IMG/VR virus record: IMGVR_UViG_3300042359_000853
Coordinates: 124,001 to 188,000 of that record
DNA: 64,000 nt
Direction: 5' to 3' (one strand)
Numbering within the stretch: position 1 is the first letter of the stretch; every line of letters begins with the position of its first letter. The notes below the pieces were generated by a model, which saw nothing but the letters and a program-made list of their open reading frames with translations, made no database searches and was not told where the DNA came from. The position numbers and the translations under genes were made by a program. Positions 15,871 to 62,441 of the stretch are shown one piece after another.

Positions 15871-17058
15871 TTACATTTTTACCTTACTCTCGGTAGTAGT
15901 TGGTGGTTTGTTGATCCGTTGAATGTTCAGTAGGACATCTTTGAAGGCGCTAAGGAATTTTTTCACCTTTGGGTTTGAGATTTGATCCGTTGGGTCGTCT
16001 AAAATCCATAGTAGATAAGCTGTGAGTTCATCATCACCAAGACGCTTTAGAAACTTTGTGAGGTTTGTTAGTTGCTTATCGGATAGATTACCAACAGCAA
16101 ATTCTGGTTCTTTTAAGGATTGAACAAGTTCAGAGTTCTTATCACGGTTGTATTTATCTAGTATTTCTGAAACCTCATCATACCTATTGAGAACGTCACG
16201 AATACTCACACTCATCATTTCTTCACAATATTGTAGAAAACGTTGAGCTCCATTTCCAACATACGAGTGGGAAACTTCTCGTAGATAATCAATGAACATA
16301 TTCACTGAAGATTCTTTACCGAAGTTCTGAACAATAAAATCACTCAAGAAAGTCCAAGAACGAGGTGTAGCGTATGCTTTTGTATTTTCGGTTGGATTCT
16401 GATACAGCTTATCAGGGTAAGCTTTAAGATAAGAGATAATCAAGGGGTGAACCCACTTTGACGCAAAGTCTGTTTGCCAATCGTTCGCAGAGAGTGAGTG
16501 AGACATATGAATAAGACGGTTGTTCAACGCATTGTCGAACTCTTCTACGTCTGTTCCATCTTCGTCACCAAGGTTACCAGAGGCCATCATTAAAACGTTA
16601 CTATTAAACTTGAAGTCACCAATCTCACGCTCAAGTAAGATCTGAAGAGCTGCGTTTCTTACAAATTGCGGAGCTCTGTTCAACTCTTCGAAGTGAATAA
16701 TGGTGGGTTGAGAGTTAGCTTTCAGAGCCCACTCTGGTGTAGAATATCCGTGACACTTCCTAGAGACACCATCGATATCTACTTCTTTAAGGTAGGGAAA
16801 CTTAAAGTCGGTTTCATCAGACATCGATAGACGTAAATCCATATACTGGAAATTCATCTTGTCTGCGATAGACCTGGCGATAGCTGATTTAGCGATACCA
16901 GGTTTTGAGGTAATATAAAGAACACCACTCTTAGGCCACATACACATAAAATATAAACGCTCTCTACGGGTGAGTTCCCGCATTCTTTGGGAGATCTCTT
17001 CGGGAAGAGCTGTGGTCACTGGAAGTGGATTTGGATTTTTTGGAGACATTTTAGCCAT
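15871..17058 (-). CDS. MoxR-like AAA+ ATPase
   Basis: SKPGIAKS (variant Walker A), IIHFEELNRA (Walker B), ASGN, DNALNNR, ATPRSW. Confidence 0.9.
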   Translation of the reverse strand: MAKMSPKNPNPLPVTTALPEEISQRMRELTRRERLYFMCMWPKSGVLYITSKPGIAKSAIARSIADKMNFQYMDLRLSMSDETDFKFPYLKEVDIDGVSRKCHGYSTPEWALKANSQPTIIHFEELNRAPQFVRNAALQILLEREIGDFKFNSNVLMMASGNLGDEDGTDVEEFDNALNNRLIHMSHSLSANDWQTDFASKWVHPLIISYLKAYPDKLYQNPTENTKAYATPRSWTFLSDFIVQNFGKESSVNMFIDYLREVSHSYVGNGAQRFLQYCEEMMSVSIRDVLNRYDEVSEILDKYNRDKNSELVQSLKEPEFAVGNLSDKQLTNLTKFLKRLGDDELTAYLLWILDDPTDQISNPKVKKFLSAFKDVLLNIQRINKPPTTTESKVKM

Positions 17059-17074
17059 AGTTCGTTTTTTTTTA

Positions 17075-17106
17075 CAAAGATAAGAAGATTTTTGGTAGAA
17101 AACAAA
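17075..17106 (-). promoter_or_regulatory. Bacteroidota primary-sigma promoter TTTG-N20-TATCTTTG
   Basis: Both elements with canonical spacing upstream of the MoxR gene. Confidence 0.75.
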
Positions 17107-17124
17107 TATTTAATGAAAATATTT

Positions 17125-17487
17125 TTAGAAAGGATATTGATTGGATTCTAACTTTACCGATCCAGAAATCAACTGGTCTAATACCCAGGCTAGATTATAG
17201 ACATCACAACTACCAAGATTGATATAATCCTCTTCTTGAGAGATAAGACAAACTTTATTATTGTGGTATCCTAAACTACAAATACTTAACGATTCAGTAT
17301 CATAGGCATCGTCGTATCCATTTACTAATCTATCTAAACGAAAAGAGGTTGGAAGATTAAGCCTGGAATCTTTGTCTTCGATTAAAAAACTTACCTTCTG
17401 TGCGATAAGGTTGATCATTTCTGATTGGAGATCTTGAATTTTTTGTCTAAACATCTTTTTTGTTTTTAGTCCAGCAAATATATCCAA
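17125..17487 (-). CDS. Hypothetical protein
   Basis: ORF in tight minus-strand operon. Confidence 0.55.
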   Translation of the reverse strand: MDIFAGLKTKKMFRQKIQDLQSEMINLIAQKVSFLIEDKDSRLNLPTSFRLDRLVNGYDDAYDTESLSICSLGYHNNKVCLISQEEDYINLGSCDVYNLAWVLDQLISGSVKLESNQYPF

Positions 17488-17493
17488 GATTTT

Positions 17494-18084
17494 CTAAATA
17501 TCCAAAGAATCTGAAAAGTTTTTTTCGACTTGTATGTTTTTTAGGGAGACAACAGGCTTGACACGCTCAAAAACCTTTTCAACCTGACCTAGATTGGATA
17601 GATTATCAATAGTTCCGGGTTTTATGGAATATTTGATAGTTTCTGTAAGTATTTTGGATTTGTCTTCTGGTGATATTTCATCTGACATTCCGATCATCTC
17701 TTGTAGTATAGGTAGATACTTCTCTACCATTTCAGAGGATATAGACCATTCGTGTGTTTCTTGAATAGCATCTCTACCAAGTTCAGATTCGACCAAAGAT
17801 TTAGTGGTCTCATTTAGAGAGATATACCTATCACTCGGAACGAAAAGAACACTTGAAACTTCACTTTCTCTTTGTGAATAAACTTTCAGAGAACCTGGAT
17901 TCATACGAGAATTTTCATACATCCGGCACCACTCGACTTTAGCTACTTCTTTGACTTGGTCGGTCAGAGTAGATACGATGTTCTCTCTTTCTTTGATCTC
18001 AAGATTGAGTTTATGTATTTGTGAAACCCTCGAAAAAAATAGTGGATCTTTAGTTTCTACGGATATTTGTAACTTTTTAGGCAT
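17494..18084 (-). CDS. Hypothetical protein
   Basis: ORF in operon, overlapping start/stop. Confidence 0.6.
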   Translation of the reverse strand: MPKKLQISVETKDPLFFSRVSQIHKLNLEIKERENIVSTLTDQVKEVAKVEWCRMYENSRMNPGSLKVYSQRESEVSSVLFVPSDRYISLNETTKSLVESELGRDAIQETHEWSISSEMVEKYLPILQEMIGMSDEISPEDKSKILTETIKYSIKPGTIDNLSNLGQVEKVFERVKPVVSLKNIQVEKNFSDSLDI

Positions 18085-20950: not shown

Positions 20951-22231
20951 TTAGTCATTTTCTTTGCCTTCGATAATGATTTGCTTGAGCTTACCATTAC
21001 TTCGAGCTATTGGGCATTCCCTATTTACAGAAATAATCAAAACTTTACCTTTTACTCTTGAAAGATCTAAATGATCGGTTTCACCATCAGTAAGAATAAC
21101 CGAGTTACAATCGTTGTGATTTTTTACAATATGATCGATCATCGGTTGTAGGCAAGTTCCACCAAGACCTTTGATAGGAATACTCTGAAGTTTTTTAGCA
21201 TTTTTGATATTCTGAACCCATTTAACTTCGGTATCAGATTCCATAAAGTTCATTTCGATATCGTTACGATTAACATATGAAAGAACCCGCTCAAAAGTTC
21301 CCTGACCACCCATTGAACCACTGGTATCTAAACCGACATTGATTCGGTTTTTCATTTTACGAACACCTTTGACACCTTGAATACTTCTGCGGTTAGGTCT
21401 TACGATAGTTTTGTTCTTGATAGTTCCAAAGATCAAATTTGAAATAGCTCTTTTGATATAGGATAGGTAATCTTTTCTTTTCTTACGAAGTTTATTGAGT
21501 GTTTTTTCTACGTTAAAACTACTAAGACCACGACTATGTAACCTATCAATAGCGTCTTTTACCATTGACTCTCTTTGCTCTTCTGAGATTTCATCAGTGA
21601 TGTGAACATCAAGATACTGACCAGAGTTTTTTTCTAGATTATCTAAGATACTATCTAATGAGTGTGTGTCAATGGTTCCACCAGGTGATTTAGGATCTTT
21701 ACCAAAAGGTCCATAACTACCACTATTCTGATCTTTACCACCATTTTTTTGACGCTCTTCTTGTTTATCACGAAGCCACTCGTAGAGCTCTTCAAAAATA
21801 AGATTACCTTCGTATTCTTTCGGAACAAAAAGTGCCATATTCTTACCCTCTTCGTCTTTGGGGATCTCAATGAAATCTGGCAGAATATCCTCTACGATAA
21901 TATGGTTGATGATCATGTCCTGTGCGATATTGGATAGTTTAGGATCGTATTGGCCAGTAATCGTTCTACGAGGATGGTTTAGAAGCAGGTGAAAATCTTC
22001 GTGAAGTGTAATAAAGTTGATCTCTCTTTGAGTGAGACGATTTAGAAAAGAACTAGAATAAAAGAAGTTCATACCCTTTGCTGTCATATTCACCGCACAG
22101 GTTCCGATATTTTCATCTTCTTTAAAGTTAATAAAAAGATTGAAGTTACCGTAAAAGGGTAAATTGACACGGCTATCAATCAGCATACTTTGAACCGATT
22201 CGAGAAGTTTCTCGTGTATGTTTTTAATCAT
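20951..22231 (-). CDS. DUF2201-like metallopeptidase + VWA-like protein (MoxR partner)
   Basis: LHEDFH (HExxH), NIAQDMIIN, RPNRR, LDTSGSM (MIDAS), GLGGT, LTDG. Confidence 0.88.
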   Translation of the reverse strand: MIKNIHEKLLESVQSMLIDSRVNLPFYGNFNLFINFKEDENIGTCAVNMTAKGMNFFYSSSFLNRLTQREINFITLHEDFHLLLNHPRRTITGQYDPKLSNIAQDMIINHIIVEDILPDFIEIPKDEEGKNMALFVPKEYEGNLIFEELYEWLRDKQEERQKNGGKDQNSGSYGPFGKDPKSPGGTIDTHSLDSILDNLEKNSGQYLDVHITDEISEEQRESMVKDAIDRLHSRGLSSFNVEKTLNKLRKKRKDYLSYIKRAISNLIFGTIKNKTIVRPNRRSIQGVKGVRKMKNRINVGLDTSGSMGGQGTFERVLSYVNRNDIEMNFMESDTEVKWVQNIKNAKKLQSIPIKGLGGTCLQPMIDHIVKNHNDCNSVILTDGETDHLDLSRVKGKVLIISVNRECPIARSNGKLKQIIIEGKEND

Positions 22232-22282: not shown

Positions 22283-22957
22283 TTAGTCTAAATGAACCGA
22301 TATTTTTTTACCCGAGAATACGACATATTCTACTCCTTCGAGACTTTTCAGTTTATCTTCAAGCTCGAAAGCTTTAGAAAAAGGTATTTGTTCGTCTGTA
22401 TTAAAGTGTAGTGTGGTTTTTCTTACTAAAGATTCGTTCAAGGGAGATGATACAACCTCTCTTTGTGAGTCAATCGAAACAACTTCAATGGATTCATTTA
22501 CGATCGATCCAACCTTATCGAGTAGTGTAAGATCTTTCTGCGCTACCGAAGACTCGTTTATTGGTGCAAAAACCTCTTTCAGCGAACGAACATACGATTC
22601 GTCTAGTTTATTTTTATAGACTATATCTAAAAGATCTTCTGAAAAACTATCAATCGTTGAGGATCTTTCTATCCAGCCAGCTTTTTCATTATCTGGATTT
22701 GAGGCGTAGAGCCATTCAATATTACCTCGATTGATACTTTCTTTTAGTATTTTTGATTTGATTTGGTAAGTTTTTGACCCACCTTGAGCGGTTCTAACCG
22801 TTTTTTGACAAGTTACATCAAAATAGAAGTTCGATCGGTGAGCGTTTTCGTGTATCTCAACCTTCTCAAAAGATTCTTTGAGGATTCTATCAATTTTGTT
22901 GATGTTTTGAATCATTAAATCTAGATTATACATATTTTTTATTTTTTTTTCAACCAA
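22283..22957 (-). CDS. Hypothetical protein
   Basis: ORF with several (L/I/V)NES sites. Confidence 0.6.
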   Translation of the reverse strand: MVEKKIKNMYNLDLMIQNINKIDRILKESFEKVEIHENAHRSNFYFDVTCQKTVRTAQGGSKTYQIKSKILKESINRGNIEWLYASNPDNEKAGWIERSSTIDSFSEDLLDIVYKNKLDESYVRSLKEVFAPINESSVAQKDLTLLDKVGSIVNESIEVVSIDSQREVVSSPLNESLVRKTTLHFNTDEQIPFSKAFELEDKLKSLEGVEYVVFSGKKISVHLD

Positions 22958-23196
22958 TCCTCTACTGATTTGTAGAGCTCTGGATCAAGAGAATCACCAA
23001 CTTGAAGAAGTATATCTTGTGTGAGTTCCAATTTTATCGAAGGATCACTCTCATTTTTTAGCATCTCAAGTTGAGATTTAATGATATTTTTACTATCATC
23101 ATCCAGTTCTGGTCTATTCTCGATCATTTCAAGAAATGATTCATCGTCCATTTCTTGATTTGATTCATTGAATTTATTAAAATTCACAATTTTCAT
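22939..23196 (-). CDS. Small acidic protein with capsid-targeting-like N-terminus
   Basis: MKIVNFNKFNES; late-type motif at 23202-23213. Confidence 0.65.
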   Translation of the reverse strand: MKIVNFNKFNESNQEMDDESFLEMIENRPELDDDSKNIIKSQLEMLKNESDPSIKLELTQDILLQVGDSLDPELYKSVEDWLKKK

Positions 23197-27404: not shown

Positions 27405-29216
27405 ATGATAACCTCTTCAGATAAACAGATATTCTCGAGTATCTGGAAATTTTCAAAGCCTTTTAAACGTGATCTTAGCTCGGTCTTTCTTCTTATTGTT
27501 TTAGTTTCGGTCTTGGATGCGGTAAATCACTACTGCTTGAGTAAGGTATTTGACACAGCTGGCGTAAAATCAGGTCTAGAAAATTCGGTCTGGTGGCTCT
27601 TTTTAGCTGGATTTGCTATGATATCAAAGATATTTTTCTCAAAATGGCGAGAAAAGATTGAGATCCAAAAACTAGATGTGAATGTTTCTAACTTTCTAAA
27701 TAGCTATTCTATATCGAAGTTTTTTACTTTTTCTAACGGCCAACACCTAAACGAGCACTCGGGTATCAAGCAGAATATTATACAAACTGGTTTTGGATCC
27801 TTGAGAAATCAGATGAATGTGTTTATCTACAACCTTGTTCCTACCCTATCGCAGTTTGTAGTTGCTATTTTTATATTTTATTGGATAAATATTTGGATGG
27901 GTATTGGATATACCCTATTTTCTCTATTTTTTGGCTTTATTCTTTTTAGATTTCATAAGTTTTTAACGCCACAGGTTGAGAAGGTAAGAGAAGTTGAAGT
28001 ATCAAACTCAAGGCTAATCTCTGAACTTTATCGGTATGTTGTTCTTATTAAAAATGAAGTAGCCGAAGATAAATCTCTCGGGGATCTCGATACAGCTCAA
28101 ACAAAATACAAAAGCTCTTATAGTCAAACCTGGCTCTCGGCTATTGATAGACTTCTGATTATTCGGCTTTCATCACAGGTGTTCAGATTTTTAAGTATTC
28201 TTTTTTGTGTATATCTTATTTATCAAGACCAAATCACGATGGGATCTATATTTTTAGTTTATCTGTGGTCTGGAAACTACATCAATGCTATTTGGTCTAT
28301 TACCGATCTACAAAAGGGTTATATTACTGATAAAATAAATATACAAAAGTATTTTGATCTGATTGGCACTGAAAGTGATGTGGTTCAAGATAAAAATCCT
28401 ATAACTGAAGGTCTTGTTGGTGATATTGAGTTCAAGAGTGTTCATTTTGCCTATCCTAAAAGAGTTGATAAATATGAAGGTGAAAAGATTTCACCGGATG
28501 AAAAAAACAGTTTTGTTTTAGATGGTATTTCTTTTGTGATACCTAAGGGAAAAAAAGTTGCTTTTGTAGGTGAGTCTGGCTCTGGTAAATCAACAATCGC
28601 AAATCTTATTCGTAGATCTTTCGATCCACAGATGGGAGAGATTTGTGTGAATGGTAACCCCTTGAAAAAGATTGACATCAAAAAGTTTCTCAAAAAGATT
28701 GGTTCAGTTGATCAGGATATTATTCTTTTTGATAGATCACTTCGTGATAATATTTCTTTTGGAACCGGTAAGCGTCTCACTGATGAGGAGCTCTCTAAAG
28801 TTGCTAAGCTATCGGGTATTGATAACTTTTTCACGAAGCTAGAGTTTGGTTGGGATACGATTATCGGTGAGAGAGGAGCTAAACTCTCTGGTGGGGAGCG
28901 TCAAAGAATAGGCATCGCAAGAGCACTTGCTAAAGAACCAGAGATCCTGATTTTTGATGAAGCGACCTCAGCACTTGACTCAAAAAATGAAAAACAAGTA
29001 TCTAAGGCTATTGAAAAATCCTCTTTTGGAAAAACCTCGATTATTATTACACACCGACTTTCAACTGCTCTTGCTTGTGATAAAATATTTGTAATGAGAC
29101 TTGGTAGAATTTTAGACTCTGGTTCTCACGCTGAACTTTTAGAACGGTGTGAATACTACCGAGAACTTGTTAAAAATCAACTCAATCCAAAAAGCGAAAC
29201 AAAAACTGAAGTCTAA
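27405..29216 (+). CDS. ABC exporter, fused TMD + ATPase (MsbA-like)
   Basis: TM N-half; GESGSGKS, LSGGERQR, ILIFDEATSALD, ITHRLST. Confidence 0.95.
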   Translation: MITSSDKQIFSSIWKFSKPFKRDLSSVFLLIVLVSVLDAVNHYCLSKVFDTAGVKSGLENSVWWLFLAGFAMISKIFFSKWREKIEIQKLDVNVSNFLNSYSISKFFTFSNGQHLNEHSGIKQNIIQTGFGSLRNQMNVFIYNLVPTLSQFVVAIFIFYWINIWMGIGYTLFSLFFGFILFRFHKFLTPQVEKVREVEVSNSRLISELYRYVVLIKNEVAEDKSLGDLDTAQTKYKSSYSQTWLSAIDRLLIIRLSSQVFRFLSILFCVYLIYQDQITMGSIFLVYLWSGNYINAIWSITDLQKGYITDKINIQKYFDLIGTESDVVQDKNPITEGLVGDIEFKSVHFAYPKRVDKYEGEKISPDEKNSFVLDGISFVIPKGKKVAFVGESGSGKSTIANLIRRSFDPQMGEICVNGNPLKKIDIKKFLKKIGSVDQDIILFDRSLRDNISFGTGKRLTDEELSKVAKLSGIDNFFTKLEFGWDTIIGERGAKLSGGERQRIGIARALAKEPEILIFDEATSALDSKNEKQVSKAIEKSSFGKTSIIITHRLSTALACDKIFVMRLGRILDSGSHAELLERCEYYRELVKNQLNPKSETKTEV

Positions 29217-34844: not shown

Positions 34845-36701
34845 ATGGCAAAAGAAAAAAAGATAGAAGAAAAGTATGTTGTCCTTGATCATATAGAGCA
34901 CATACTACTTAGACCACAAACCTACATCGGAGCAAATAAACCACATACTCAAAAAAGATGGATACCCCAGGGATCCAAGATGATACAAGAGGAACTCACT
35001 TATGTTCCGAGTTTTCTAAAAATATTTGATGAGATTATCTCAAACTCAGTTGATGAAAGTAAAAGAAATAAAAAACTTAACCGAATAGATGTAAATATTG
35101 ATAAAAAGACCGGCGAAATATCAGTTTCTGATAACGGTGGAATACCGGTGGTCATTCATAAAACTCATAATCAAATGGTTCCCGAGGTTATTTTTGGAAA
35201 TCTTATGTCTGGCTCAAACTACGATGATACAGAAGAAAGAGTAGTGATGGGTCTCAATGGATTAGGATCGAAACTCACCAACGTTTTTTCTAAAAAGTTT
35301 GTAGTTCAAACCTGTGATGGTAAAAATGGATTTCTTCAAGTTTTTTCCCAGAATATGAGAGAAAGAACACAACCCACTATAACAAAAGGAGGCACACCAG
35401 GAACGAAGATCACTTATCTTCCTGATCTAGATAGGTTTGGTCTAAAAAAACTCGATACAGCTCATTACAATCTATTACATAAACGAGTGGTTGATATTGC
35501 TGGATGTAATCCATCAGTCAAGATTTTTTTCTGTGGTAGTGAAATCAAATGTAAATCTTTCGAGGATTATGTAAGGTGGTATCGTCAAGATTATTACTAC
35601 GAAAAATCAACCGACGGTCTTTGGTCAGTGGCTGTTGCTCCTTCTAGTGAAGGTTTTTCCCAGGTAAGTTTTGTCAATGGATCAGACACTTATGATGGTG
35701 GATCACATGTTGATTATATAACAAGTGGTATTATTCAACCACTCAGAGATTACTTCATGAAAAAATTCAAAGTAGATGTAAAACCTTCAGAGATCAAAAA
35801 TCACTTTCAGATTTTTCTTTCTTCAACAATTGTGAATCCTAGTTTTTCCTCTCAAACAAAAGAAAAACTTATTACTGAACCTAAAGATTGGGGTTATACT
35901 TTTACTATTTCACCTAAAATGATAGGTTGGATACTAAGATCCGAAATTGTAAAATCTATATCTGATTGGATCATTCAGAAAAAAGCAGCTGATCAAAATA
36001 AAATGCAACGACAGCTCAATAAACAAGTTGATAATCTTAAAGTTGAAAAGTTAGTTGATGCCAAGGCTAAAGATAGATGGAGGTGTTCGCTCGGTATTTT
36101 TGAGGGAGATTCGGCTAGTAACTCGTTTAGAAAATACAGAGATCCACAAACACAAGGATCTTTTTCTCTCAAAGGTAAGTTTATAAATGTAAGCGATTTA
36201 GCTCTTCAGAAAATGACTGATAATAAAGAGCTTGTAAATCTTATGTCAGCTATTGGCCTAAAACTTGGGCAAAAAGCAACCTTGAAAACCTTGAGATGGG
36301 GTCGTATTATATTCTACGCCGATCAAGACCCCGATGGTAACTCTATTGTAGCTCTTCTTCTGAACTTTTTCTATAAGTTTTGGCCTGAACTTTTTGATAT
36401 GAACTTCGTTTTCAAAGCAGAGACACCTCTCATGGTTGTGAAATCATCGAAACTTACAGAAGATCTATGGTTCTATTCTATGCAAGAGTTTGATAAATGG
36501 TCTGGTGGCAAAAGCTTGAAAGATTATACGATTACCTATAAAAAAGGACTTGGTGCTCTCGAAGATGATGAATATAAGAAGATTATAAAAACACCCAACT
36601 TAGTTAAAATTTCAAGTGATGAACTTTCTACTAAAAAACTAGATATTTGGTTTGGAAAAAACTCAGCTCTTAGAAAAGAGGAGTTATTTGATGTGGTTTG
36701 A
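34845..36701 (+). CDS. DNA topoisomerase II large subunit (gp39+gp60 fused; GHKL + TOPRIM)
   Basis: EHILLRPQTYIG, EIISNSVDE, DNGGIP, GLNGLGSK, EGDSA, LKGK, DQDPDG, YKKGLG. Confidence 0.96.
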   Translation: MAKEKKIEEKYVVLDHIEHILLRPQTYIGANKPHTQKRWIPQGSKMIQEELTYVPSFLKIFDEIISNSVDESKRNKKLNRIDVNIDKKTGEISVSDNGGIPVVIHKTHNQMVPEVIFGNLMSGSNYDDTEERVVMGLNGLGSKLTNVFSKKFVVQTCDGKNGFLQVFSQNMRERTQPTITKGGTPGTKITYLPDLDRFGLKKLDTAHYNLLHKRVVDIAGCNPSVKIFFCGSEIKCKSFEDYVRWYRQDYYYEKSTDGLWSVAVAPSSEGFSQVSFVNGSDTYDGGSHVDYITSGIIQPLRDYFMKKFKVDVKPSEIKNHFQIFLSSTIVNPSFSSQTKEKLITEPKDWGYTFTISPKMIGWILRSEIVKSISDWIIQKKAADQNKMQRQLNKQVDNLKVEKLVDAKAKDRWRCSLGIFEGDSASNSFRKYRDPQTQGSFSLKGKFINVSDLALQKMTDNKELVNLMSAIGLKLGQKATLKTLRWGRIIFYADQDPDGNSIVALLLNFFYKFWPELFDMNFVFKAETPLMVVKSSKLTEDLWFYSMQEFDKWSGGKSLKDYTITYKKGLGALEDDEYKKIIKTPNLVKISSDELSTKKLDIWFGKNSALRKEELFDVV

Positions 36702-37592
36702 TCCAAGTAAGTAGTTACTAGAATCTCCGGCAAAGAGTGTAGTATAACCTAGTTTCTCTTCTAGGAATGTTTTAGTTTGACCGGTAAAATCTTCAATCCA
36801 AATGTGTGGTCTATGATTCACGATAGTATTTATAGATCCTCTAATAAGTTCTAACTCGTGACCTTCTACATCTATTTTCATAAAAGAAATATTATCAAAA
36901 CCAAAATCATCCAAAATTGAGCTCTGAACAAGCTCACCACTTTCGGATATAGCAGTTGAACCCCTATTCCATGATGCTGGATTTTCCATAAATAAAGTTC
37001 CTCTTTTAGAAGAGAGAGCGGTCTTGAATGTATGAATATTTTTTATTTTTTTCGTGTTTGTTAGAAGAAGTTCGTAATTTGCGCTACTTGGTTCAAAAGA
37101 ATAGATATTACTTTCTGGAAAATATTTATGAAACATCAAGCTATGATTTCCAATATTGGCACCACAATCTATAATGTTTTTAATATTATTCAGATATGGT
37201 AGAAATTGAAAGAAAAGATCAGATTCCCAAAATTTATTGAATTTTACGATATACTCAGAAATCAAATCGCCGGCATGTAACGTCAAATCGAATGATTCTA
37301 AACGAAAAGTTTTTTTATTTTTATCCTCTTCAAAATAAATTGCCTCTTCTAGTAGGATATTTCCCTCAGAAACAATACTGACAAAAACACCCTCTATTTT
37401 TGTATTTTCAAATATTTCTTTATTGAGATTAATTTCAACATTCCCGTTAGTAGGTATCCAGATCCATCCAGAATAAAATAGATCAATTTTATTCAGATTA
37501 AATACCGTAATATCTGAAGTAATAGGTTGGGTATTTATATTGTTAATTATAAGTTTGTGATTGATATAGTCTATTGTTGTTAGAAGTATCAT
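36684..37592 (-). CDS. FkbM-family methyltransferase
   Basis: IDCGANIGNHS, SFEP, FMKIDVEGHE. Confidence 0.9.
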   Translation of the reverse strand: MILLTTIDYINHKLIINNINTQPITSDITVFNLNKIDLFYSGWIWIPTNGNVEINLNKEIFENTKIEGVFVSIVSEGNILLEEAIYFEEDKNKKTFRLESFDLTLHAGDLISEYIVKFNKFWESDLFFQFLPYLNNIKNIIDCGANIGNHSLMFHKYFPESNIYSFEPSSANYELLLTNTKKIKNIHTFKTALSSKRGTLFMENPASWNRGSTAISESGELVQSSILDDFGFDNISFMKIDVEGHELELIRGSINTIVNHRPHIWIEDFTGQTKTFLEEKLGYTTLFAGDSSNYLLGSNHIK

Positions 37593-37661
37593 ATAAAAGG
37601 ATTGTTCGTAATTTAAGAATATTGGATTTAATATCTAGTTATTTTTATATATAGGATTTAT

Positions 37662-39773
37662 ATGTTTATTATAGAAAAGGTCTCTAAATTTCTAGAAAAT
37701 ATAGAATATTATTCACAGGATATGCTAAAAGATTTTTATTCTAAATCTTCTGATATTAATACAATTGGATCTTTTGAACTGTATAGAAAATATCTTTCTA
37801 CTATATTTGAAGATTTTCGTATTGAATATCGTGGAGATATCTCGGGACTAGAGGAATTTAGATATTCTAATTCTGTTATTGATAGAGATGGAAAATCAGA
37901 TGTTCGTCATAAAATGGGTTCAGGGGTTTATACCACACCCAATCTTTATCAAGCTCAACAATATGCAGATCAGGTTTTGGGTAAAATATATTTTGTTTTA
38001 ATCAATCAAACCGATGAACTTAGATATTCATCAAAACTTTATTTTTATAGAGATGTCGCTAGTTTTGTAGGGAACCCGAATAGACCACCAAATGGATTTG
38101 ATATAGATAGATTTACAAGACACATGCAAAAACTTGGTAGATCTATTCATGTGAAAAAAATATCAACACAAGATGAAACCGTTCACCCTGTAGAAAATAC
38201 CTGGATACTTGGATCTAAAAAAGATATTTTAGGATTTTCTAGGTTTCTCGATAGTCAAACTCAAAACTTGATTGAAAGAAATATTACTTTTAATGATCTT
38301 GATAAAACAAGCTCGGGTCAAAAAAGAGGTGACATTTTGCTCGGTAAAATAGTTCGAGGTGAAGAAATACCACTCAAACCCGAAGGTGAATCAGGAGTTG
38401 TAATCAAAAGAATTTCAGATATTATCAATAAGAACACCCAAGATATAACTTCAAGAAATTTAATAGCTCCTAAATATACACCCTATGATTCTGTAAAGAT
38501 GAGAGATGTGTTCCTAAAAAGACCAGATTATAAAAAATATACGAATAGTCTAAGGGCCGAAGATGGTGAAGAATATAAATTGAACGATATTGTAAAAACT
38601 TCGGATTTTGGATCTTCCGGTGGAAGTTCATTGGGAACAGAATCTACAATTAAAGTTGAAAGTATTTATTGTTTTTATTTTGCTATTCGACAATTTTTAA
38701 ATAGAGATATTTCAATAACTGATGATATTTCCTACTTTCTTACTTCACCTTCTGTTTTGGATTTTATCAAAACACCTATTCAAGTTACACAAGAAATGCT
38801 GGATAGATTTAGTCAATGGGAAAGTAGTTTTATAGAAACCGTGAATGGTATTAACAGAACAGATAAATACCTTGTTAAAGATAGAAAAAACAATAGTGTT
38901 CTTGATAGTAATAAAAAATATTCCTTTCATCAAATAAACTCTAGAGATGATCTTATTACTTCGTTATCAGACAAATACCGTAGTTTCAATTTAGGTATTC
39001 CAATATCTAAATGGACACCTTCCGATATTTGGTCAGTTGATGTAGAAAGAAAGGATCATATTATTGGTCTTATTAGGGCCTGTAGATCACTCCAAGATCT
39101 CAATAGAATTGTAAATAATTCATTTGATAGATCTGAACTTGTTGGAATTTCTATTAAAAAAATTAAAAGTGGCCAAAATAACTTTAAGATCATTATCAAT
39201 AATGAATCCCCTAAGCCACAATACACTTTCTCGAAAGTCATCATACTTGATAATCCTTTAGAAACACTTAACACTACAATTGTTGTAAATAGAAAATCCG
39301 AAGTATATGGTGATGGTGAAGAGAAAATTGATTTTAGAACCTACGACTCGAATATAAGAAATATAGTAGGAGAAGTTCAGGGTAGTGAAGCTAAATTTGG
39401 AAAAATATCACTAGGTCAAATCAATAAAATGTTGAAAGATTTAGAGATTGGAGAAGTTCCGAACTACGTCGAATTGATGAATCTCGATGAAAAAGATTTA
39501 AGGGAAAAAATTCTAGATATAAATAATAAAATTCTACAAAATTCATCACTCAGTGACTATATTAGGATAAGTAGAGTTCGTTCTGATTCAAAACCTCAGA
39601 CAAAAAGAAGACTTATATCTAAATATCAAGGTCTTTTCCTAGTTTCTACTCTATTAGACAAGTTGTTGGTTAGTAAAGAATCTGTGGATAATGTTCTTCA
39701 AAAAATATTCTATTACGCTCTTGCTATTGAAAATCAAGAATATGAATGCCCTAAATACATTCGTATTATATGA
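37662..39773 (+). CDS. Two-domain protein: N-terminal ADP-ribosyltransferase-like, C-terminal PD-(D/E)XK-like
   Basis: YRG..F..GSGVYTT..A..YA..GKIYFVLI; KWTPSDIW..LVGISIKK. Confidence 0.5.
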   Translation: MFIIEKVSKFLENIEYYSQDMLKDFYSKSSDINTIGSFELYRKYLSTIFEDFRIEYRGDISGLEEFRYSNSVIDRDGKSDVRHKMGSGVYTTPNLYQAQQYADQVLGKIYFVLINQTDELRYSSKLYFYRDVASFVGNPNRPPNGFDIDRFTRHMQKLGRSIHVKKISTQDETVHPVENTWILGSKKDILGFSRFLDSQTQNLIERNITFNDLDKTSSGQKRGDILLGKIVRGEEIPLKPEGESGVVIKRISDIINKNTQDITSRNLIAPKYTPYDSVKMRDVFLKRPDYKKYTNSLRAEDGEEYKLNDIVKTSDFGSSGGSSLGTESTIKVESIYCFYFAIRQFLNRDISITDDISYFLTSPSVLDFIKTPIQVTQEMLDRFSQWESSFIETVNGINRTDKYLVKDRKNNSVLDSNKKYSFHQINSRDDLITSLSDKYRSFNLGIPISKWTPSDIWSVDVERKDHIIGLIRACRSLQDLNRIVNNSFDRSELVGISIKKIKSGQNNFKIIINNESPKPQYTFSKVIILDNPLETLNTTIVVNRKSEVYGDGEEKIDFRTYDSNIRNIVGEVQGSEAKFGKISLGQINKMLKDLEIGEVPNYVELMNLDEKDLREKILDINNKILQNSSLSDYIRISRVRSDSKPQTKRRLISKYQGLFLVSTLLDKLLVSKESVDNVLQKIFYYALAIENQEYECPKYIRII

Positions 39774-39825: not shown

Positions 39826-40452
39826 TTAAGAAACATAAACTTGTGGTGGTTGAATAGTAAATCCACCGTCAATATACTCATCAATGAAGTAATCCCAAAC
39901 AAAAGTAGCATCGATACTGTTGATGATACCTGGTGTTGCCCAATCAAAATCAGCATAAGTCAAAGTTTGAAGTTGGCAATTTTGGTAAGTTACTCTTCTA
40001 AGCACATATCCTTTTTTATCATGTTGATTAACAATTATTGTTCCGATAAGATCAGATTTATAATGAAGAGAACCGTTTTGAGAGTTCCAAGCTAGATCAT
40101 ACCAAGCTTTGAGTGTAGTGAAGGTTTCCATATTCAATTGCTCATTAACATTCACGTTGAATGGAATTGTGATTGTTCCAGAGGTTGTTTGTGGAGTATT
40201 CAAAAATTCACGAGTTGAGTATTTAAATCTTTGCGTTGAGTTTTGAAGGTTTCTAGTGAGCTGTGTTTGATTTATCGGAGCTTTAAGACCTTGTTGAAGA
40301 AGAAGAACTGGATCTCTTCCTTGTGCTTGTAAAATTACCGGTAGAAGAAAAGTAATCTCAAAGAGATTGGTATATACCGGTTCTTGTGGCTTGGTTCCAG
40401 GACCACCCGGAGAACCAGTCATATAAAGTTGTGTGAAATGTGGTAGAGGCAT
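39826..40452 (-). CDS. Tail tube protein (T4 gp19-like)
   Basis: PVYTNLFEITF, W..L..N..G..K.D..GTIIV.Q.DKKG..R..Y.NC, DW, F.WDY; late motif upstream. Confidence 0.75.
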   Translation of the reverse strand: MPLPHFTQLYMTGSPGGPGTKPQEPVYTNLFEITFLLPVILQAQGRDPVLLLQQGLKAPINQTQLTRNLQNSTQRFKYSTREFLNTPQTTSGTITIPFNVNVNEQLNMETFTTLKAWYDLAWNSQNGSLHYKSDLIGTIIVNQHDKKGYVLRRVTYQNCQLQTLTYADFDWATPGIINSIDATFVWDYFIDEYIDGGFTIQPPQVYVS

Positions 40453-40536: not shown

Positions 40537-41661
40537 ATGAGTAAAATATTTTTAGTAGGTGATATACACCTAGGTATGGGTTGGCCTAATAGTTATACTA
40601 AATGGTCAAAGGTCCATCAAGATTATTTTTCCGATTTTCTATTTCCACTTCTTGAAAGTCAGTTAAGTAGCCAAGATATTATTGTATTACTTGGTGATTT
40701 TTTTGATAATCGTGAAGTGATACCTATAGATACCTTAAATTATGGAAAAAGTGTTATAGAAAGATTATCTCGGTTAGCTCCAACACACATCATCGTTGGA
40801 AATCACGATCTTTGGACTAGAAGTTCATCCGAGATCAATTCAGTCAATATTTTTGGATGGATACCGAATGTTTCTATTTATCAAAAAACTTCCCAAATCC
40901 AATATAGAGATAAGAAGATTTGTATGATGCCCTATATTCACCATAAAGAAGAACAAATCAAAGAAATCGAAAAATTTAGAGATAGTAACTATTTATTTTG
41001 TCATTCAGATCTGAATGGATGTAAAATGCACTTAACATCGACAGCGCATAGAAACTCGGATAAAATTGATCTAGATGAGTTCAGGTCTTTTGAAAAAGTA
41101 AGATCAGGTCATATTCACATTCGTCAAGAGACAGGTATATTCAAGTTTGTTGGTTCTATTTTTCAAATGGATAGAGCTGATATGGGAGACCAGAAAGGTA
41201 TTTGGATTATTGATACTGATGATGATTCCGAGGTTTTCATCCCCAACACGAAATCTCCTATTTTCGAAAAGGTTTATGTTAAAACTCCTGAAGATGTTGA
41301 AGATTTATCTAACCTAAAAGATTCTAAAAACTGGATAGATCTCTATATCTCAAACTCACTTCTTATCAACAACAGAAAACTCAGAAGAAAGTTGGAGATT
41401 CTTTTAGAAACAATTAACTTTTTATCGGTAAGTTATATTGATGATATTCAAGTTTTAGAAAAATTAGAAGGTCAAAATGAGTCAGGAGTCTTGGACGAAG
41501 AGGTCATAGCAAGAGCTATCAATCTTGAACTCGAATATACAGAAGTTATTAAAAACTATATAGAAGAACAAAAGTGGGAATCAAAAAAGATCAAATCTGG
41601 TATTCTTACTGAGTTTGACGAAATTAGTAGAATATATCAAGATGGATTTCAAAAAAATTAA
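40537..41661 (+). CDS. Recombination nuclease (T4 gp47 / Mre11-SbcD-like)
   Basis: GDIHLG, LGDFFDNR, VGNHD, FCH, SGHIH. Confidence 0.92.
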   Translation: MSKIFLVGDIHLGMGWPNSYTKWSKVHQDYFSDFLFPLLESQLSSQDIIVLLGDFFDNREVIPIDTLNYGKSVIERLSRLAPTHIIVGNHDLWTRSSSEINSVNIFGWIPNVSIYQKTSQIQYRDKKICMMPYIHHKEEQIKEIEKFRDSNYLFCHSDLNGCKMHLTSTAHRNSDKIDLDEFRSFEKVRSGHIHIRQETGIFKFVGSIFQMDRADMGDQKGIWIIDTDDDSEVFIPNTKSPIFEKVYVKTPEDVEDLSNLKDSKNWIDLYISNSLLINNRKLRRKLEILLETINFLSVSYIDDIQVLEKLEGQNESGVLDEEVIARAINLELEYTEVIKNYIEEQKWESKKIKSGILTEFDEISRIYQDGFQKN

Positions 41662-41664
41662 ACT

Positions 41665-42471
41665 ATGATACTTGTTACTGGATACAAAGGATTTATTGGT
41701 AAAAACCTATTTGATAAACTCATACAACTCAACTACTCCATCACAGGTTTAGATAGTGAATATTTTCTAGAAGAAGATTGGCAAGGTTGGCTAAAAAAGT
41801 ACTTGAATGATAAATCACCAAGTTTCGTATTTCATGTAGGTGCGTGCTCCGATACACTAGAGACTGATGTAAATTATATGCTTACTAGAAACTATGAATC
41901 TACTAGAATCATTTCTTCTTGGTGCGAAAGAAACGGTGTGGGTTTGGTTTATTCTTCCTCGGCTGCTAACTATGGATCGACTGGTCATCTTCCTACAAAT
42001 CTTTATGGATGGAGTAAAAAAATAGCTGAAGATTTTGTATTATTAAAAGGTGGGGTTGCTCTTCGATATTTCAATGCCTTCGGACCTGGTGAAGAAGGTA
42101 AAGGTAAAATGGCTTCTGTAGCCTATCAATCATGGATTAGAAATAAAGTGGGTGAGAAGATTAAACTCTTTCCAGGCCGTCCAACTCGAGATTTTATCTA
42201 TATAAGAGATATTGTAGAGGCGAATATATCTGCTATGAAAAACTACAGATCTATTTTTGGTAATTACTATGATATAGGAACTGGAGTTTCATCACCATTT
42301 GAAGATGTTTTAGAAAATTTAGATATACCTTTCACCTATACCGATAGTCTAGAAATACCAAAAGGATATCAATTTTTCACACAAGCTAATTCATCGAAAT
42401 TTCTAAGAGGTTGGGAACCCAGATGGACTCTCTCAACTGCTCTAGCCGATTATAGAAAATATTTAGATTAA
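41665..42471 (+). CDS. hldD: ADP-L-glycero-D-manno-heptose 6-epimerase-like
   Basis: TGYKGFIG, FHVGACSDT, YSSSAANYG, YGWSK, LRYFN, GKGKMASV, RDFIY. Confidence 0.85.
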   Translation: MILVTGYKGFIGKNLFDKLIQLNYSITGLDSEYFLEEDWQGWLKKYLNDKSPSFVFHVGACSDTLETDVNYMLTRNYESTRIISSWCERNGVGLVYSSSAANYGSTGHLPTNLYGWSKKIAEDFVLLKGGVALRYFNAFGPGEEGKGKMASVAYQSWIRNKVGEKIKLFPGRPTRDFIYIRDIVEANISAMKNYRSIFGNYYDIGTGVSSPFEDVLENLDIPFTYTDSLEIPKGYQFFTQANSSKFLRGWEPRWTLSTALADYRKYLD

Positions 42472-43409
42472 GCAAATATCTTATTCGCGTAGTTTCTGGT
42501 TTCTCTGCTCAATTGGTCCTGTATTTCTACAAAAGGAATTCCATCTTCTAGAGCTTTTTTATAAATATCTAGATTAGGACCACTGTTGTATCCAGCAACA
42601 GCTAGGTCAAGTCTTTTCGGAAACCTATTTAGATGATCATTCATCATTTTTATATAGATTCTTAAAGATTCTTCTGAATTAGTTCTTAGACCACGACCAC
42701 CATAGGAGTTCCAAGTTCCTATCAAAAACTGACACAGACCCACAGCTCCTGCACTAGATCTTGCCCTAGGATTAAAGTTAGATTCAGTGTAGATTTGTCT
42801 TAGCGCTATAATATAGGGAAGACCTATTGAATTACAATCCCCCTCGAATTTTTTTGCTACTTCTTGGCCTACCACTTCTACGAATTTATTCTTCAAGCTC
42901 TCATCATCAGGTAAAGGATCTCTAGAAGGGGCTTTAGCACCATCAAAAGTGGGAATACCCCCTTTCAGTGGAAGATCAAACTGTCTATTTAATACTGGTG
43001 ATTCAGACTCCTTGCGAACAGGTCCTTCTGGTGGCATTTCAGTTGAGGGTTTTTTTGTAGTAGTAGAAGTTGTTGTTGCTTCTTTGGTTGTAGTTGTTGG
43101 TGTAGTATCTTGTTCTTTTGGTGTTCCGGCTGGTGTTTTCCAGGCCTGAGCTCTAGTTATCACTTTTTTTGGTGAGCCATCTTCTCTTTCATCTGGAAAT
43201 TCAGTATCTAATATGTCGATTGATCTTTGATAAGAGTCTTTGAAATCTTTTCCAGTTATTTGATACCATTTCGTTGAACCCTTTCGTCTTGAGAGCCAAT
43301 GTCCACCTTCTACCTTGTACTCAAAAGGATCGCCAGATCGTGTTTTAATTTCACCTACAGATTCGGTCAGATAGCTATAAAATTGTTCCCAATTATGAAG
43401 TCTTCTCAT
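42468..43409 (-). CDS. Lytic transglycosylase (SLT domain) with T/P linker
   Basis: TESNFNPRARSSAGAVGLCQF, AGYNSGP, ETRNY. Confidence 0.9.
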   Translation of the reverse strand: MRRLHNWEQFYSYLTESVGEIKTRSGDPFEYKVEGGHWLSRRKGSTKWYQITGKDFKDSYQRSIDILDTEFPDEREDGSPKKVITRAQAWKTPAGTPKEQDTTPTTTTKEATTTSTTTKKPSTEMPPEGPVRKESESPVLNRQFDLPLKGGIPTFDGAKAPSRDPLPDDESLKNKFVEVVGQEVAKKFEGDCNSIGLPYIIALRQIYTESNFNPRARSSAGAVGLCQFLIGTWNSYGGRGLRTNSEESLRIYIKMMNDHLNRFPKRLDLAVAGYNSGPNLDIYKKALEDGIPFVEIQDQLSRETRNYANKIFA

Positions 43410-43423
43410 AGATTTGTTTTTTT

Positions 43424-43990
43424 TTATCTAGAATAGTTAGGTGTTCTAGGCCCCTTTTTGCCCTCTTTTTCAACCTTTCTTTTACGAGCAACAGATGCCT
43501 TTTTTTGTTTTTTTGTCATTTTAGCTGCTACTCTTACCTTACGACATTTTGGATATCCACCCCTCGACGCATCATCTCTACCACATGGTGGATGTGATCC
43601 ATCTGGATTTGTTTTAGAAATATCAACCCACTTTTCTTTAAACCACTTATCTAGACCACCGTGAGTATCTGAATAAGACCGTTTTTTTTCAAAGAACTGA
43701 GAATAGGATAGAATGTTATCTATAGATTCCTGTGTATTTTCTATTTGTTCTAGTTTATCGTAGTATTTCGGATCTTCCATCAGATGATCAGTAGCTATTT
43801 CTCTAGCAATACTCTGGTCATCGGTGTGCTCCATTTCAACAGAAATACCCCTTTCTAGTTGCTTGTCGATCGTCTGATCTTCAATAGGAAGATTGTGTTT
43901 CTTCTTGATATCTGCTAGAGTTTTACCATCGGATAGACCACCTGGTATTTTATCTTCTAAAAAAGATTGATATTTTAGAACGTCTTTCAT
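43424..43990 (-). CDS. DUF5661-like domain + basic C-terminal domain
   Basis: GISVEMEHT..AREIATDHLMEDPKYYDKL; GLDKWFKEKWVDI..PCGR..YPKCR. Confidence 0.7.
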   Translation of the reverse strand: MKDVLKYQSFLEDKIPGGLSDGKTLADIKKKHNLPIEDQTIDKQLERGISVEMEHTDDQSIAREIATDHLMEDPKYYDKLEQIENTQESIDNILSYSQFFEKKRSYSDTHGGLDKWFKEKWVDISKTNPDGSHPPCGRDDASRGGYPKCRKVRVAAKMTKKQKKASVARKRKVEKEGKKGPRTPNYSR

Positions 43991-46285: not shown

Positions 46286-47707
46286 ATGATTGATAAATAT
46301 TCCCAGTTTTTAGCACAAAAACTCTTATTAGAATCTGAAATCAAATATTCTGATGGTTTTAGAAAGATATTATCTGATATTGGTGACCCAGTAAGTAAAA
46401 CACTATCTTCTCTGGAAAATCAAGATATTAAAACGAATGTTAATTTTATTGATATTCTCAAAGATGATAAAGAGCAATTATCGTTTATTCAAGATAAAAA
46501 AGCTTCAACTCTTTTAAGTAAACTCAAAAATGAAATAGATGTAACTTGGAATGGACAGGGTGGAATACTCAAGAACAACGCGGATAATGAAGATGTTTTT
46601 TCAGCTCTTGGATATGTTAGACCTGAATCCGGTAATCTTCCAAGACCAGCTTCTACACAAACCAGAGGAAAATTATTGAGAGATACGATTTCACCTAAAA
46701 GTGGTAAAATCTATGTTCTTGTAAAGTTTGGTGATATGGAAACAGTTCTCAATAAAGAGTTCTTAAATTTTGTTGATAGATCCGATGAGATCTGGACCCA
46801 ATCAGTTAGACAACCCATGCGTGTAGGAAGAGCAGTGACTGCTCTATTACAAAATGCACCTGTGAAACACACTTCGGTTGAAATTGCTGATTTTGTAAAT
46901 AGATATAAAACAAAAGTTGATGAACTAAATGACGTATTTAGATTTATAGAAGTTGTAAGTGGTGATGATATAGCTAAGTGGTATCATGTAGAAAACTATG
47001 AAGAAAAATCGGGTGGTTCAGAACTTCACCGATCATGTATGGCAAGAAAATCAGCAGGTGTCTTTGAAATCTATACCAAGAATCCAGAAGTTTGTCAGTT
47101 AATTATTCAAAAAAGTGAGAGTGATCCCGACAAAATATCCGCTAGAGCTCTTCTGTGGACTTTGAATAGTGGAAAAAAGTTTATGGATAGAGTTTATTTT
47201 AATGATCCTCAGTCTATTGAGTTATTTAGAAGTTATTGTAAAGAAAATAATATATGGGCTAAATATAATAATAATAGCGGAGCTTTTTCATCTGCTATTA
47301 ATCCCGAAAATGGATCTAGAGAAGAGATCGAAATAGAAGTGGTTCTTGAATCGAGGAAGTACCGTCAGTTTCCCTATATGGATACACTGAAGTTTTTTCA
47401 TCCGAAAAAAGCAATTCTAGACAACTCACATGAGGATGATCCGAACTGGTATAAATTAGAAGACACCGCTGGTGATTATATAAGTCAAGAAGATCAGGGG
47501 TGTGATAGGTGCTACGGTGAAGATTATGTTGATTGTTGGGAATGTGATGGAACGGCTTATTCTAGTTGTGATAATTGTGACGGAGACGGTAAAGTTGAAG
47601 ATGAAGATGGAACAAAAGTTGAATGTGATGTATGCAATGGTAGTGGCAGAATCAATTGTGATACTTGTGATGGGGATGGAAGACTTACTTGTCCTGAATG
47701 TGGTTAA
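46286..47707 (+). CDS. SCM-RALLW-MDRVY family protein, copy 2, with C-terminal DnaJ-type zinc finger
   Basis: RSCMARK..ARALLW..FMDRVY..FPYMDTLKF; five CxxCxG repeats plus a terminal CPEC. Confidence 0.75.
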   Translation: MIDKYSQFLAQKLLLESEIKYSDGFRKILSDIGDPVSKTLSSLENQDIKTNVNFIDILKDDKEQLSFIQDKKASTLLSKLKNEIDVTWNGQGGILKNNADNEDVFSALGYVRPESGNLPRPASTQTRGKLLRDTISPKSGKIYVLVKFGDMETVLNKEFLNFVDRSDEIWTQSVRQPMRVGRAVTALLQNAPVKHTSVEIADFVNRYKTKVDELNDVFRFIEVVSGDDIAKWYHVENYEEKSGGSELHRSCMARKSAGVFEIYTKNPEVCQLIIQKSESDPDKISARALLWTLNSGKKFMDRVYFNDPQSIELFRSYCKENNIWAKYNNNSGAFSSAINPENGSREEIEIEVVLESRKYRQFPYMDTLKFFHPKKAILDNSHEDDPNWYKLEDTAGDYISQEDQGCDRCYGEDYVDCWECDGTAYSSCDNCDGDGKVEDEDGTKVECDVCNGSGRINCDTCDGDGRLTCPECG

Positions 47708-61934: not shown

Positions 61935-62441
61935 ATGTTAAACCAAAAACCTACTAACACACAGAAATACCATCAAGGATTGTATATTCCACAGAATCGT
62001 GATAAACTCATTAAAGCTAACAACGAAGGTGGCGTCTATTATAGAAGTGGTCTTGAGAAAAAAATGATGATCTATCTAGATCTTAATGATAAAATTTCAA
62101 GGTGGTGCTCAGAATATATTAAAATACCTTATGAGAAAACCGAATGGAGTTCTGTAAGAAAAGATTTTGAGACAACCCAACATACTTATTATCCTGATTT
62201 TTACTATGAACTTTATAAATCAGACGGTAGTCTTTCTAAAGTTGTAGCAGAGGTTAAACCACGCTCAGAAACAATTGAGCCAGTAATCAAGGAAAACATG
62301 ACCTCGAAACAGATAAGAAATCTCGAATACAGCTTAAAAACATATAATAAAAACCTACAAAAGTGGAAGTATATGATAGAATATTGTCAGAGAAAAGGGT
62401 TCGAGTTCATTATTATCACCGAAGAACATTTAGGAAATTGA
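61935..62441 (+). CDS. Head completion nuclease (T4 gp4 / TnsA-like)
   Basis: YRSGLE, W.SE..IPY, HTYYPDF, EVKP, KW, F.IITE. Confidence 0.9.
   Translation: MLNQKPTNTQKYHQGLYIPQNRDKLIKANNEGGVYYRSGLEKKMMIYLDLNDKISRWCSEYIKIPYEKTEWSSVRKDFETTQHTYYPDFYYELYKSDGSLSKVVAEVKPRSETIEPVIKENMTSKQIRNLEYSLKTYNKNLQKWKYMIEYCQRKGFEFIIITEEHLGN

Follow-up and report, generated by a model that had tools for sequence, protein, structure and literature searches.

Enzymes that are packaged in the phage head and act before phage gene expression, T4 Alt and the internal proteins being examples, are difficult to spot in phages that have not been cultured. An open reading frame (ORF) of 703 amino acids (aa) at positions 37662..39773 (+ strand) of a 64,000-nucleotide stretch of phage DNA, the window, raises the question whether it encodes such an enzyme. 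The window comprises bases 124001-188000 of a phage contig of 227,583 bp (IMG/VR record IMGVR_UViG_3300042359_000853; CheckV completeness 39%). An earlier note, made from the letters alone, had described the product as a putative packaged polyprotein in which an ADP-ribosyltransferase (ART) is joined to a nuclease. The ORF opens with ATG, is uninterrupted and encodes a leader, an ART-fold domain and a module of the phrog_1462 family. The best explanation, to which we give about an even chance, is that this fusion protein is a packaged two-module ART effector of a very large T4-like myovirus.

Domain architecture of the fusion protein

The ATG is preceded at a distance of 5 nt by the Shine-Dalgarno sequence AGGA (37653..37656, +). 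All motif strings that had been quoted for the protein were found in place: EYRGD at aa 55-59, MGSGVYTT at aa 85-92, AQQYA at aa 98-102, KWTPSDIW at aa 450-457, GISIKK at aa 495-500 and ILGFSRFLDSQTQNLIE at aa 189-205. Moreover, the quoted motif residues are the conserved ones, both in a 94-sequence alignment of the C-terminal family (C-family) and in the alignment of the ART family.

An exhaustive HMMER search with the fusion protein gave 346 representatives at E<=1e-3. Nearly all of these align to aa ~200-703 and are stand-alone proteins of 490-550 aa; over this part, identity to many proteins of 490-530 aa is 35-40%. A small separate group of ~200-aa proteins (P0154, P0164, P0179 and P0130) aligns to aa ~20-200, and in P0144 and P0157 (340-372 aa) the match to the ART family is the C-terminal part. 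The split into two domains is real, as each part matches its own separate protein family, and on these alignments the fusion protein is best described as two independent modules. Full-length homologues with 86-97% identity, plus one at 47% (P0007, on the 174-kb contig of locus L006), occur in independent metagenomes, so that gene and fusion are real and not a chance frame or an assembly accident. The fusion to an ART is restricted to five sequence clusters. The closest relatives of the C-terminal part that have no ART are P0005 (74% identical) and P0006 (65%). P0005 shares nine of its first 11 residues with the fusion protein and P0006 has a similar start; since both run from this leader directly into the family body, the ART domain sits exactly between leader and body.

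The N-terminal domain (aa ~20-200; 37719..38261, +) was delimited with a structural model and family profiles. The AlphaFold2 model, made from a nine-sequence alignment, has a mean predicted local distance difference test (pLDDT) score of 81 and predicts the split beta-sheet of ARTs. Its top Foldseek matches in the PDB are all ARTs, namely tankyrase/PARP catalytic domains, cholix toxin and AcrIF11, an anti-CRISPR protein that ADP-ribosylates (probability 0.97-1.0, low template modelling scores), in agreement with the fold that had been proposed for this domain. Sequence profiles of its relatives point in the same direction. The Pfam family ART-PolyVal (PF18760) matches five of the nine ART-family members at E<=1, with P0157 as the best (2.7e-6; 28.6 bits against a gathering cut-off of 31.2), and DUF3990, which belongs to the ART clan (PMC7955679), matches two. 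The cut-off of PF18760 is not reached by the relatives, and this profile has no match to the fusion protein itself or in the six-frame translated genome. Pfam, NCBIfam, PADLOC and PDB sequences yielded nothing significant, whether the query was the full-length protein, one of its halves or one of the two family profiles. A word-based homologue search returned nothing for the N-domain alone and, with its alignment, just two sequences that were already known.

G86, G88, Y90, A102 and Y110 do not vary within the ART family, and R57 and E172 are retained wherever a member covers their positions. R57 (37830..37832, +) belongs to Y-R-G-D on strand 1 (model strand 52-59) and corresponds to the His/Arg of ART motif I; aa 50-184 of the model align to residues 14-163 of diphtheria toxin, which places R57 near toxin residue 21. 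Strand 2 (model strand 88-92) reads G-x-G-V-Y90-T-T, and position 101, eleven residues past Y90, is always Y or F (Y90-T-T ... Y101-A102; 37929..37964, +). This Y-x10-aromatic spacing is typical of the NAD pockets of diphtheria toxin (DT) and the PARPs. E172 (38175..38177, +), which opens the late strand 172-175, is the candidate catalytic Glu and is Glu in eight of the eight members that reach it. R57, Y90, Y/F101 and E172 are among the best-conserved positions of the family. As modelled, the domain is an ART-fold domain of a divergent DT/PARP-like lineage in which Arg replaces the strand-1 His; its NAD site is plausibly intact in the model, and from its residues the domain is probably catalytically active.

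The C-terminal module (aa 206-703; 38277..39770, +) belongs to phrog_1462, a virus-only family of ~500-aa proteins of unknown function, which it matches in PHROGs with an E value of 2.1e-24 over aa 283-686. In the 94-sequence alignment, whose numbering plus 200 gives the residue numbers used here, E333, K450, P453, D455, S497, K499 and G580 are invariant and all are present in the fusion protein; K312, F316, G317, W386, K500, N513, E571, G574, S653 and Q656 are near-invariant. A glycine-rich loop, K312-x3-F-G-S-S-G-G, and a helix with the invariant E333 (38595..38660, +; helix 125-146 of the model) come first. K450-W-T-P-S-D455 (39009..39026, +) stands directly before a strand (model 256-260) and G-I-S497-I-K499-K500 (39144..39161, +) at the end of the next one (model 293-297); both are kept in ORF90 of the Synechococcus phage S-SCSM1. 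A near-invariant hairpin, G-E571-V-x-G ... F-G580-K (39369..39404, +), was delimited from the alignment, the model and the comparison with ORF90. The AlphaFold2 model of the module has a pLDDT of 91 and a predicted template modelling score of 0.88. In the ESM Atlas and BFVD, this fold is found in just viral hypothetical proteins, many of them from cyanomyoviruses (P-HM1, S-RIM44, S-RIM8, P-SSM3 and P-TIM68). A pattern scan of GTDB representatives gave no relatives of the C-family in cellular genomes.

This module had been read as a PD-(D/E)XK-like domain. The residues behind that reading, E...D...SxK, are present and invariant, but a significant match to a fold or profile was not obtained: the best Foldseek hit in the PDB has an E value of 0.04, and profile searches of Pfam, PADLOC and PDB sequences with the C-family were empty. 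The order of the elements, with a helix that bears Glu, an Asp directly ahead of a strand and Ser-x-Lys in the strand after it, favours a nuclease and is shared with Type IIP PD-(D/E)xK enzymes (HpaII, PF09561; MspI, PF09208; HaeIII, PF09556; and the Cfr10I/NgoMIV type with D...SxK). In two language-model feature searches, the HpaII, HaeIII and MspI families were the best named leads, with scores of 0.82-0.88 that lie below the trusted level, and MspI gave the longest structural alignment of the module, without significance. Unlike these enzymes, the module has two helices between its two motif strands, which is unusual for PD-(D/E)xK, and it has no conserved methyltransferase partner and no cellular relatives in the scan. 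We regard it as a candidate nuclease, with a chance that stays clearly below even. Close to an even chance is given to the alternative that it is not a nuclease. It might then serve as a carrier, or bind the internal core, so that cargo reaches the capsid in the way MuF takes along its fused effectors, or it might be an enzyme of a different class whose fold is new. In the latter version, which shares the same estimate, the glycine-rich loop and the Lys, Asp and Ser residues would be used, for example, on nucleotides or NAD-derived molecules.

Leader, domain junction and probable packaging

Aa 1-15 of the fusion protein (MFIIEKVSKFLEN...; 37662..37706, +) form a leader that is a candidate capsid-targeting propeptide, by its likeness to the leader of the C-family and to the capsid-targeting sequence (CTS) of the T4 internal proteins IPII and IPIII. 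The pLDDT of aa 1-13 is below 50. Stand-alone family members open with M-K-I-x-K-[FYW]-x-x-F-[LIF]-E, which is common to at least 36 N-termini. The CTS in both IPII and IPIII is MKTYQEFIAE (read from NC_000866); its first ten residues are enough for targeting, which depends on residues 4 and 7, whereas processing depends on residues 8 and 10 (PMC9026906). Like the CTS of IPI, IPII and IPIII, the family leader is a short N-terminal element with an aromatic residue, a Phe at +3, an aliphatic residue and a Glu, common to unrelated proteins of one genome. In contrast to T4, its aromatic residue is at position 5-7 and not at 4, and its Glu often stands one residue earlier; moreover, the phage is distantly T4-like and its protease has a long C-terminal part.

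A position-specific scoring matrix (PSSM) was built from 36 C-family leaders. Among the 71 ORF N-termini of two T4 loci, it ranked IPIII and IPII first. In the genome studied here, eight ORF N-termini scored at least 8, against 0.31 expected from internal windows; the tail sheath, which is one of the eight, was taken for a chance match. The core leader pattern is enriched 5-7 fold at N-termini of this genome (p ~1e-3 to 1e-4). Its bearers are ~8-12 unrelated ORFs, mostly of unknown function, plus one lytic transglycosylase, and those tested have no mutual similarity. Strong leaders are found on an 85-aa ORF (22939..23196, -; PSSM score 18.1) and on a 188-aa ORF of unknown function (43424..43990, -; 16.1). 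The lytic transglycosylase ORF (42468..43409, -), whose SLT domain was seen in its L006 counterpart, has a leader-like N-terminus. The pattern aromatic-x-x-F-[LIF]-E also opens an ORF at window positions 46286-47707 (+) and ORFs at genome positions 89220-89603, 115018-116421, 16322-17611, 206625-207179 and 225027-225608 (all -). By their N-termini, these ORFs are a candidate set of capsid-packaged proteins. In another locus (L001), the stand-alone ART P0154 and an unrelated adjacent gene carry a near-identical leader. The 377-aa gene that follows the stand-alone ART there was considered as a short C-family member and rejected, as the leader alone aligns.

For the fusion protein itself, the capsid-targeting-like N-terminus that had been noticed stands in part. 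The start resembles the family leader in its type of pattern and is near-identical to those of the closest relatives without an ART, but its own PSSM score is low. A second such motif had been seen between the domains, and the string is indeed there, but it is a composite of the last ART helix and a leader-closing Glu. The string opens with the helix that is conserved at the C-terminus of the ART family, where stand-alone ARTs also end, and finishes with L-I-E205, which aligns with the near-invariant (>=90%) Glu at the close of the leader in stand-alone members of the C-family. The junction (aa 199-206, ...NLIE/R...; 38256..38279, +) has low confidence in both models. The T4 prohead protease cuts at Glu with Leu, Ile or Phe two residues before, and LIE fits its cleavage logo (PMC9026906), which makes E205 a candidate site. 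If the stand-alone proteins lose their leader by a cut at that Glu, an equivalent cut here would part the ART from the C-terminal module. We infer from the aligned sequences that the polypeptide may be cleaved into two proteins.

The packaging that had been proposed is supported indirectly, by a virion-labelled homologue and by the T4-CTS-like leader of the family; for this very protein it is predicted. The homologue is ORF90 of S-SCSM1 (NC_070962; 444 aa), which was found by relaxed tblastn and is annotated as 'virion protein'. In a comparison with hhalign, the C-family profile matched it with a probability of 99.9% (E 2e-33, 344 columns), and ORF90 retains all of the invariant motifs. CsCl-purified virions of S-SCSM1 have been analysed by mass spectrometry, which gave 45 proteins, including a nicotinamide mononucleotide adenylyltransferase (NMNAT) and 13 proteins of unknown function, marked on the genome map (PMC9602691). 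The label of ORF90, this mass spectrometry and the hhalign match together indicate that a C-family member reaches the virion of a cultured T4-like cyanophage. In S-SCSM1 (locus L023, 1794-7272), ORF90 lies in a run of five virion-labelled genes within a replication-side block. The NMNAT is among them and begins with MKSFLQFLKEA, which is T4-CTS-like. Downstream of the family gene, the phages MED4-213 and S-SSM5 have a KxDG (ligase-like) gene and cytidylyltransferases. The S-SCSM1 run and these neighbours may represent a co-packaged set of NAD- or nucleotide-related enzymes. Packaged ARTs have been described as common in myoviruses (PMC9503650). In addition, the contig encodes a head-maturation protease, and the fusion gene and a baseplate-subunit-like gene are transcribed towards each other, which is also the arrangement of T4 alt and gene 54.

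From these comparisons, the fusion protein is probably an enzyme cargo that is delivered into the host with the DNA. The leader would load it into the prohead core, and cuts by the prohead protease behind the leader and behind E205 may free two proteins. The fusion protein would be carried in the capsid and enter the cell with the DNA, where the ART would act early, as T4 Alt does, most likely by transferring ADP-ribose from NAD+ to a host macromolecule. The C-terminal module may cut nucleic acid by its invariant E...D...SxK centre, which is the weakest link of the proposal.

Several observations speak against this proposal. The fusion protein has a Val at the place of the aromatic leader residue and scores -1.2 with the leader PSSM, and the cyanophage members, including the virion-annotated one, have no obvious leader. 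ORF90 is a distant homologue, the virion status of which was taken from the label in its record and not from a peptide table. Profiles of Pfam, NCBIfam, PADLOC and PDB sequences give no match to the fusion protein itself, and the R-Y-E site of its ART fits neither the H-Y-D of ART-PolyVal nor the R-S-E of Alt. Lastly, the family gene adjoins topoisomerase II and replication genes in four related loci and lies in a gp43-uvsX-gp41 block in cyanophages, a position that looks like early or middle rather than late expression.

Some of these points would also fit a cytoplasmic enzyme of early or middle expression that is not packaged, a reading which we consider rather unlikely. The ART would then act after its synthesis, like ModA and ModB of T4, the C-terminal module would be a factor of DNA metabolism that works with the topoisomerase II and replication or repair genes, and the N-terminal motif would be a structural helix or an expression signal. 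The gene order agrees with this: the family gene is directly downstream of the gene for the topoisomerase II large subunit (34845..36701, +; a gp39/60-like Pfam match) in the window and in L005, L006 and L020, a 5'-3' exonuclease gene follows it in L005 and L020, and mazG is part of the cyanophage block. The low PSSM score of the N-terminus counts on the same side, as does the T4 late-promoter box TATAAATA, which is absent upstream of the gene; in the window this box has 16 matches against 8.5 expected, a weak enrichment, and neither the absence nor the enrichment is informative. However, the S-SCSM1 member is virion-annotated within a five-gene virion run of the same replication-side block, so that a replication-side position does not exclude packaging. 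Moreover, the leader recurs on unrelated ORFs, its PSSM ranks the T4 CTS first, and it occurs on a virion-annotated NMNAT. We keep the packaged effector as the preferred reading.

Comparison with known ART systems

The earlier note had raised an Alt-like injected factor; a relationship to T4 Alt was rejected. BLASTP against Alt gave a best E value of 3.1, hhalign of the family profile against Alt a probability of 0.3%, and a match to an Alt PHROG was not found. Furthermore, strand 2 reads G-V-Y-T-T, which is DT/PARP-like and not R-S-E/S-T-S; the R-S-E active site is that of Alt and the Mod proteins of T4, while H-Y-D is that of ART-PolyVal (PMC5512222). The fusion protein resembles Alt in its length of ~700 aa, its ART fold, its origin from a T4-like myovirus and its convergent orientation with an adjoining gene of the baseplate or tail-tube type. 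A place in the capsid and an action on the host upon entry are also predicted for it. In T4, the prohead protease shortens Alt at both termini (PMC9026906). In contrast to Alt, the fusion protein has a pocket of R, Y, Y-x10-Y and E, and its ART is N-terminal and joined to an unrelated 500-aa family. It is thus Alt-like at most by analogy.

ARTs are the commonest enzymatic part of polyvalent virion-delivered effectors (Iyer et al. 2017, PMC5512222). The polyvalent proteins with ART-PolyVal (PF18760), which is the nearest Pfam family of the N-domain's relatives, likewise combine an ART with an unrelated predicted activity in one phage polypeptide, for which delivery with the DNA is predicted. 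The fusion protein differs from them in that it is not scored by this family, its relatives remain below the cut-off and its site is R-Y-E rather than H-Y-D; in addition, it has two modules, with no MuF, zincin peptidase or N4-type RNA polymerase. The proteins of phrog_1462, called 'T4-like GC 533' in cyanophages and represented by S-SCSM1 ORF90, have the same invariant motifs as the C-terminal module; unlike the fusion protein, they are stand-alone proteins of 440-550 aa, and the cyanophage ones have no obvious leader. In summary, the fusion protein belongs to the ART superfamily and to phrog_1462 and falls outside the Alt clade and the definition of ART-PolyVal.

An improbable alternative is that the N-domain does not act as a transferase but hydrolyses NAD+ as a glycohydrolase, or that it is a binding module of ART fold without catalytic activity. 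In favour of this, the Arg at strand 1 of an otherwise DT/PARP-like pocket is an unusual mix, and among the structural neighbours are the RES-family toxin MbcT, by which NAD+ is degraded without protein modification, and ParT, which ADP-ribosylates the enzyme Prs. Against it, all motif positions hold catalytic-type residues that are the best conserved of the family, and ART-PolyVal, the nearest Pfam family of the relatives, is predicted to modify proteins.

The same ART was also found in a different setting, on an 84.9-kb metagenome scaffold (L003, 731-12227). There, the 372-aa protein P0144 carries it at its C-terminus; the P0144 gene is flanked by ORFs of 1755 and 1533 aa, and an M15 peptidase gene comes next, a layout reminiscent of the block for internal or ejection proteins in a podovirus. 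A 421-aa ORF in L005 with an ...ESKIEY-like start was considered as an ART and rejected.

The injection of ARTs and polyvalent effectors with the DNA is an established principle, which the fusion protein extends without forming a new category. What is new is the combination of domains and the unusual ART variant within a known strategy, be it an Alt-like or a polyvalent injected effector. More novel are an uncharacterised family that is associated with virions and has no relative of solved structure, and the prospect that a T4-type leader extends to huge phages. Of use, if confirmed, would be an ART family with an unusual Arg-containing DT/PARP-type pocket that occurs alone, fused to the C-family or between giant ORFs resembling those of internal proteins, a large virus-only family with an enzyme-like invariant centre in the virion of at least one cultured cyanophage, and a simple N-terminal motif that might flag packaged cargo in huge phages and their relatives. 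A wider proposal, which we hold to be doubtful, is that the T4-type targeting leader works beyond the T-even phages, in ~600-kb huge phages, their relatives and cyanomyoviruses, and that phrog_1462 is a virion-delivered enzyme platform of new fold, to which effectors like the present R-Y-E ART are joined that the prohead protease frees. In that case, phrog_1462 would have been kept from cyanophages to huge phages, possibly as a restriction-like nuclease. If the reach of the leader holds, the injected-protein set of uncultured phages might be readable from N-termini alone.

Genome context

The phage, with a G+C content of ~33%, is a large, distantly T4-like myovirus. Its contig encodes both topoisomerase II subunits, a gp47/SbcD-like nuclease, a portal, a major head protein, a tail sheath of 1239 aa, an endolysin and a head-maturation protease with a long C-terminal part. 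The protease gene matches phrog_207 (2.6e-29) and, weakly, Pfam S77 (8.4e-5). It is a 709-aa ORF at genome positions 189773-191902 (-), in which a protease domain (aa 4-252) is fused to ~450 further residues that are possibly a scaffold.

The order of topoisomerase II and family gene is also found in L005, L006 and L020. In the window, an FkbM-family methyltransferase gene (36684-37592, -) stands between topoisomerase II and the fusion gene; it is absent at the same position in the related L006. The convergent neighbour (39826..40452, -) encodes a 208-aa, baseplate-subunit-like protein and appears to be a late structural gene (phrog_32623). Its link to the baseplate rests on the annotation of a 'baseplate subunit' of Tenacibaculum phage PTm1 (tblastn E 1e-6); a relationship to T4 gp54 was rejected as not significant (E 0.58). 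The 208-aa gene is also located beside the 47%-identical fusion gene in L006. Uncultured huge phages (630-735 kb; LR745206, LR756502 and others) encode homologues that are 65% identical to its product. Taken with the CheckV completeness of 39%, these suggest that the contig is probably a fragment of a ~600-kb phage. In a synteny check of the huge phage LR745206, the slot beside the baseplate-like gene was found to hold unrelated genes.

The 174-kb contig of L006, on which P0007 is encoded, is labelled 'bacterium' or Candidatus Elulimicrobium (Patescibacteria group) in public databases. Its gene content is of the phage type, with topoisomerase II, an SbcD-like nuclease, a holin and SLT, and it is therefore probably a mis-binned phage contig.

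Elsewhere in the window, an ABC-ATPase gene (27405-29216, +) and the SbcD/gp47-like nuclease gene (40537-41661, +) are ~11 kb apart and not adjacent. By length and family, the ATPase is possibly the Rad50/gp46-like partner. Homing/HNH endonuclease genes of 505 and 568 aa (phrog_3339) at window positions 62430-63947 (-) and genome positions 191980-193686 (-) split the head module near the genes for the major head protein and the protease, and another HNH gene is found at window positions 20951-22231 (-).

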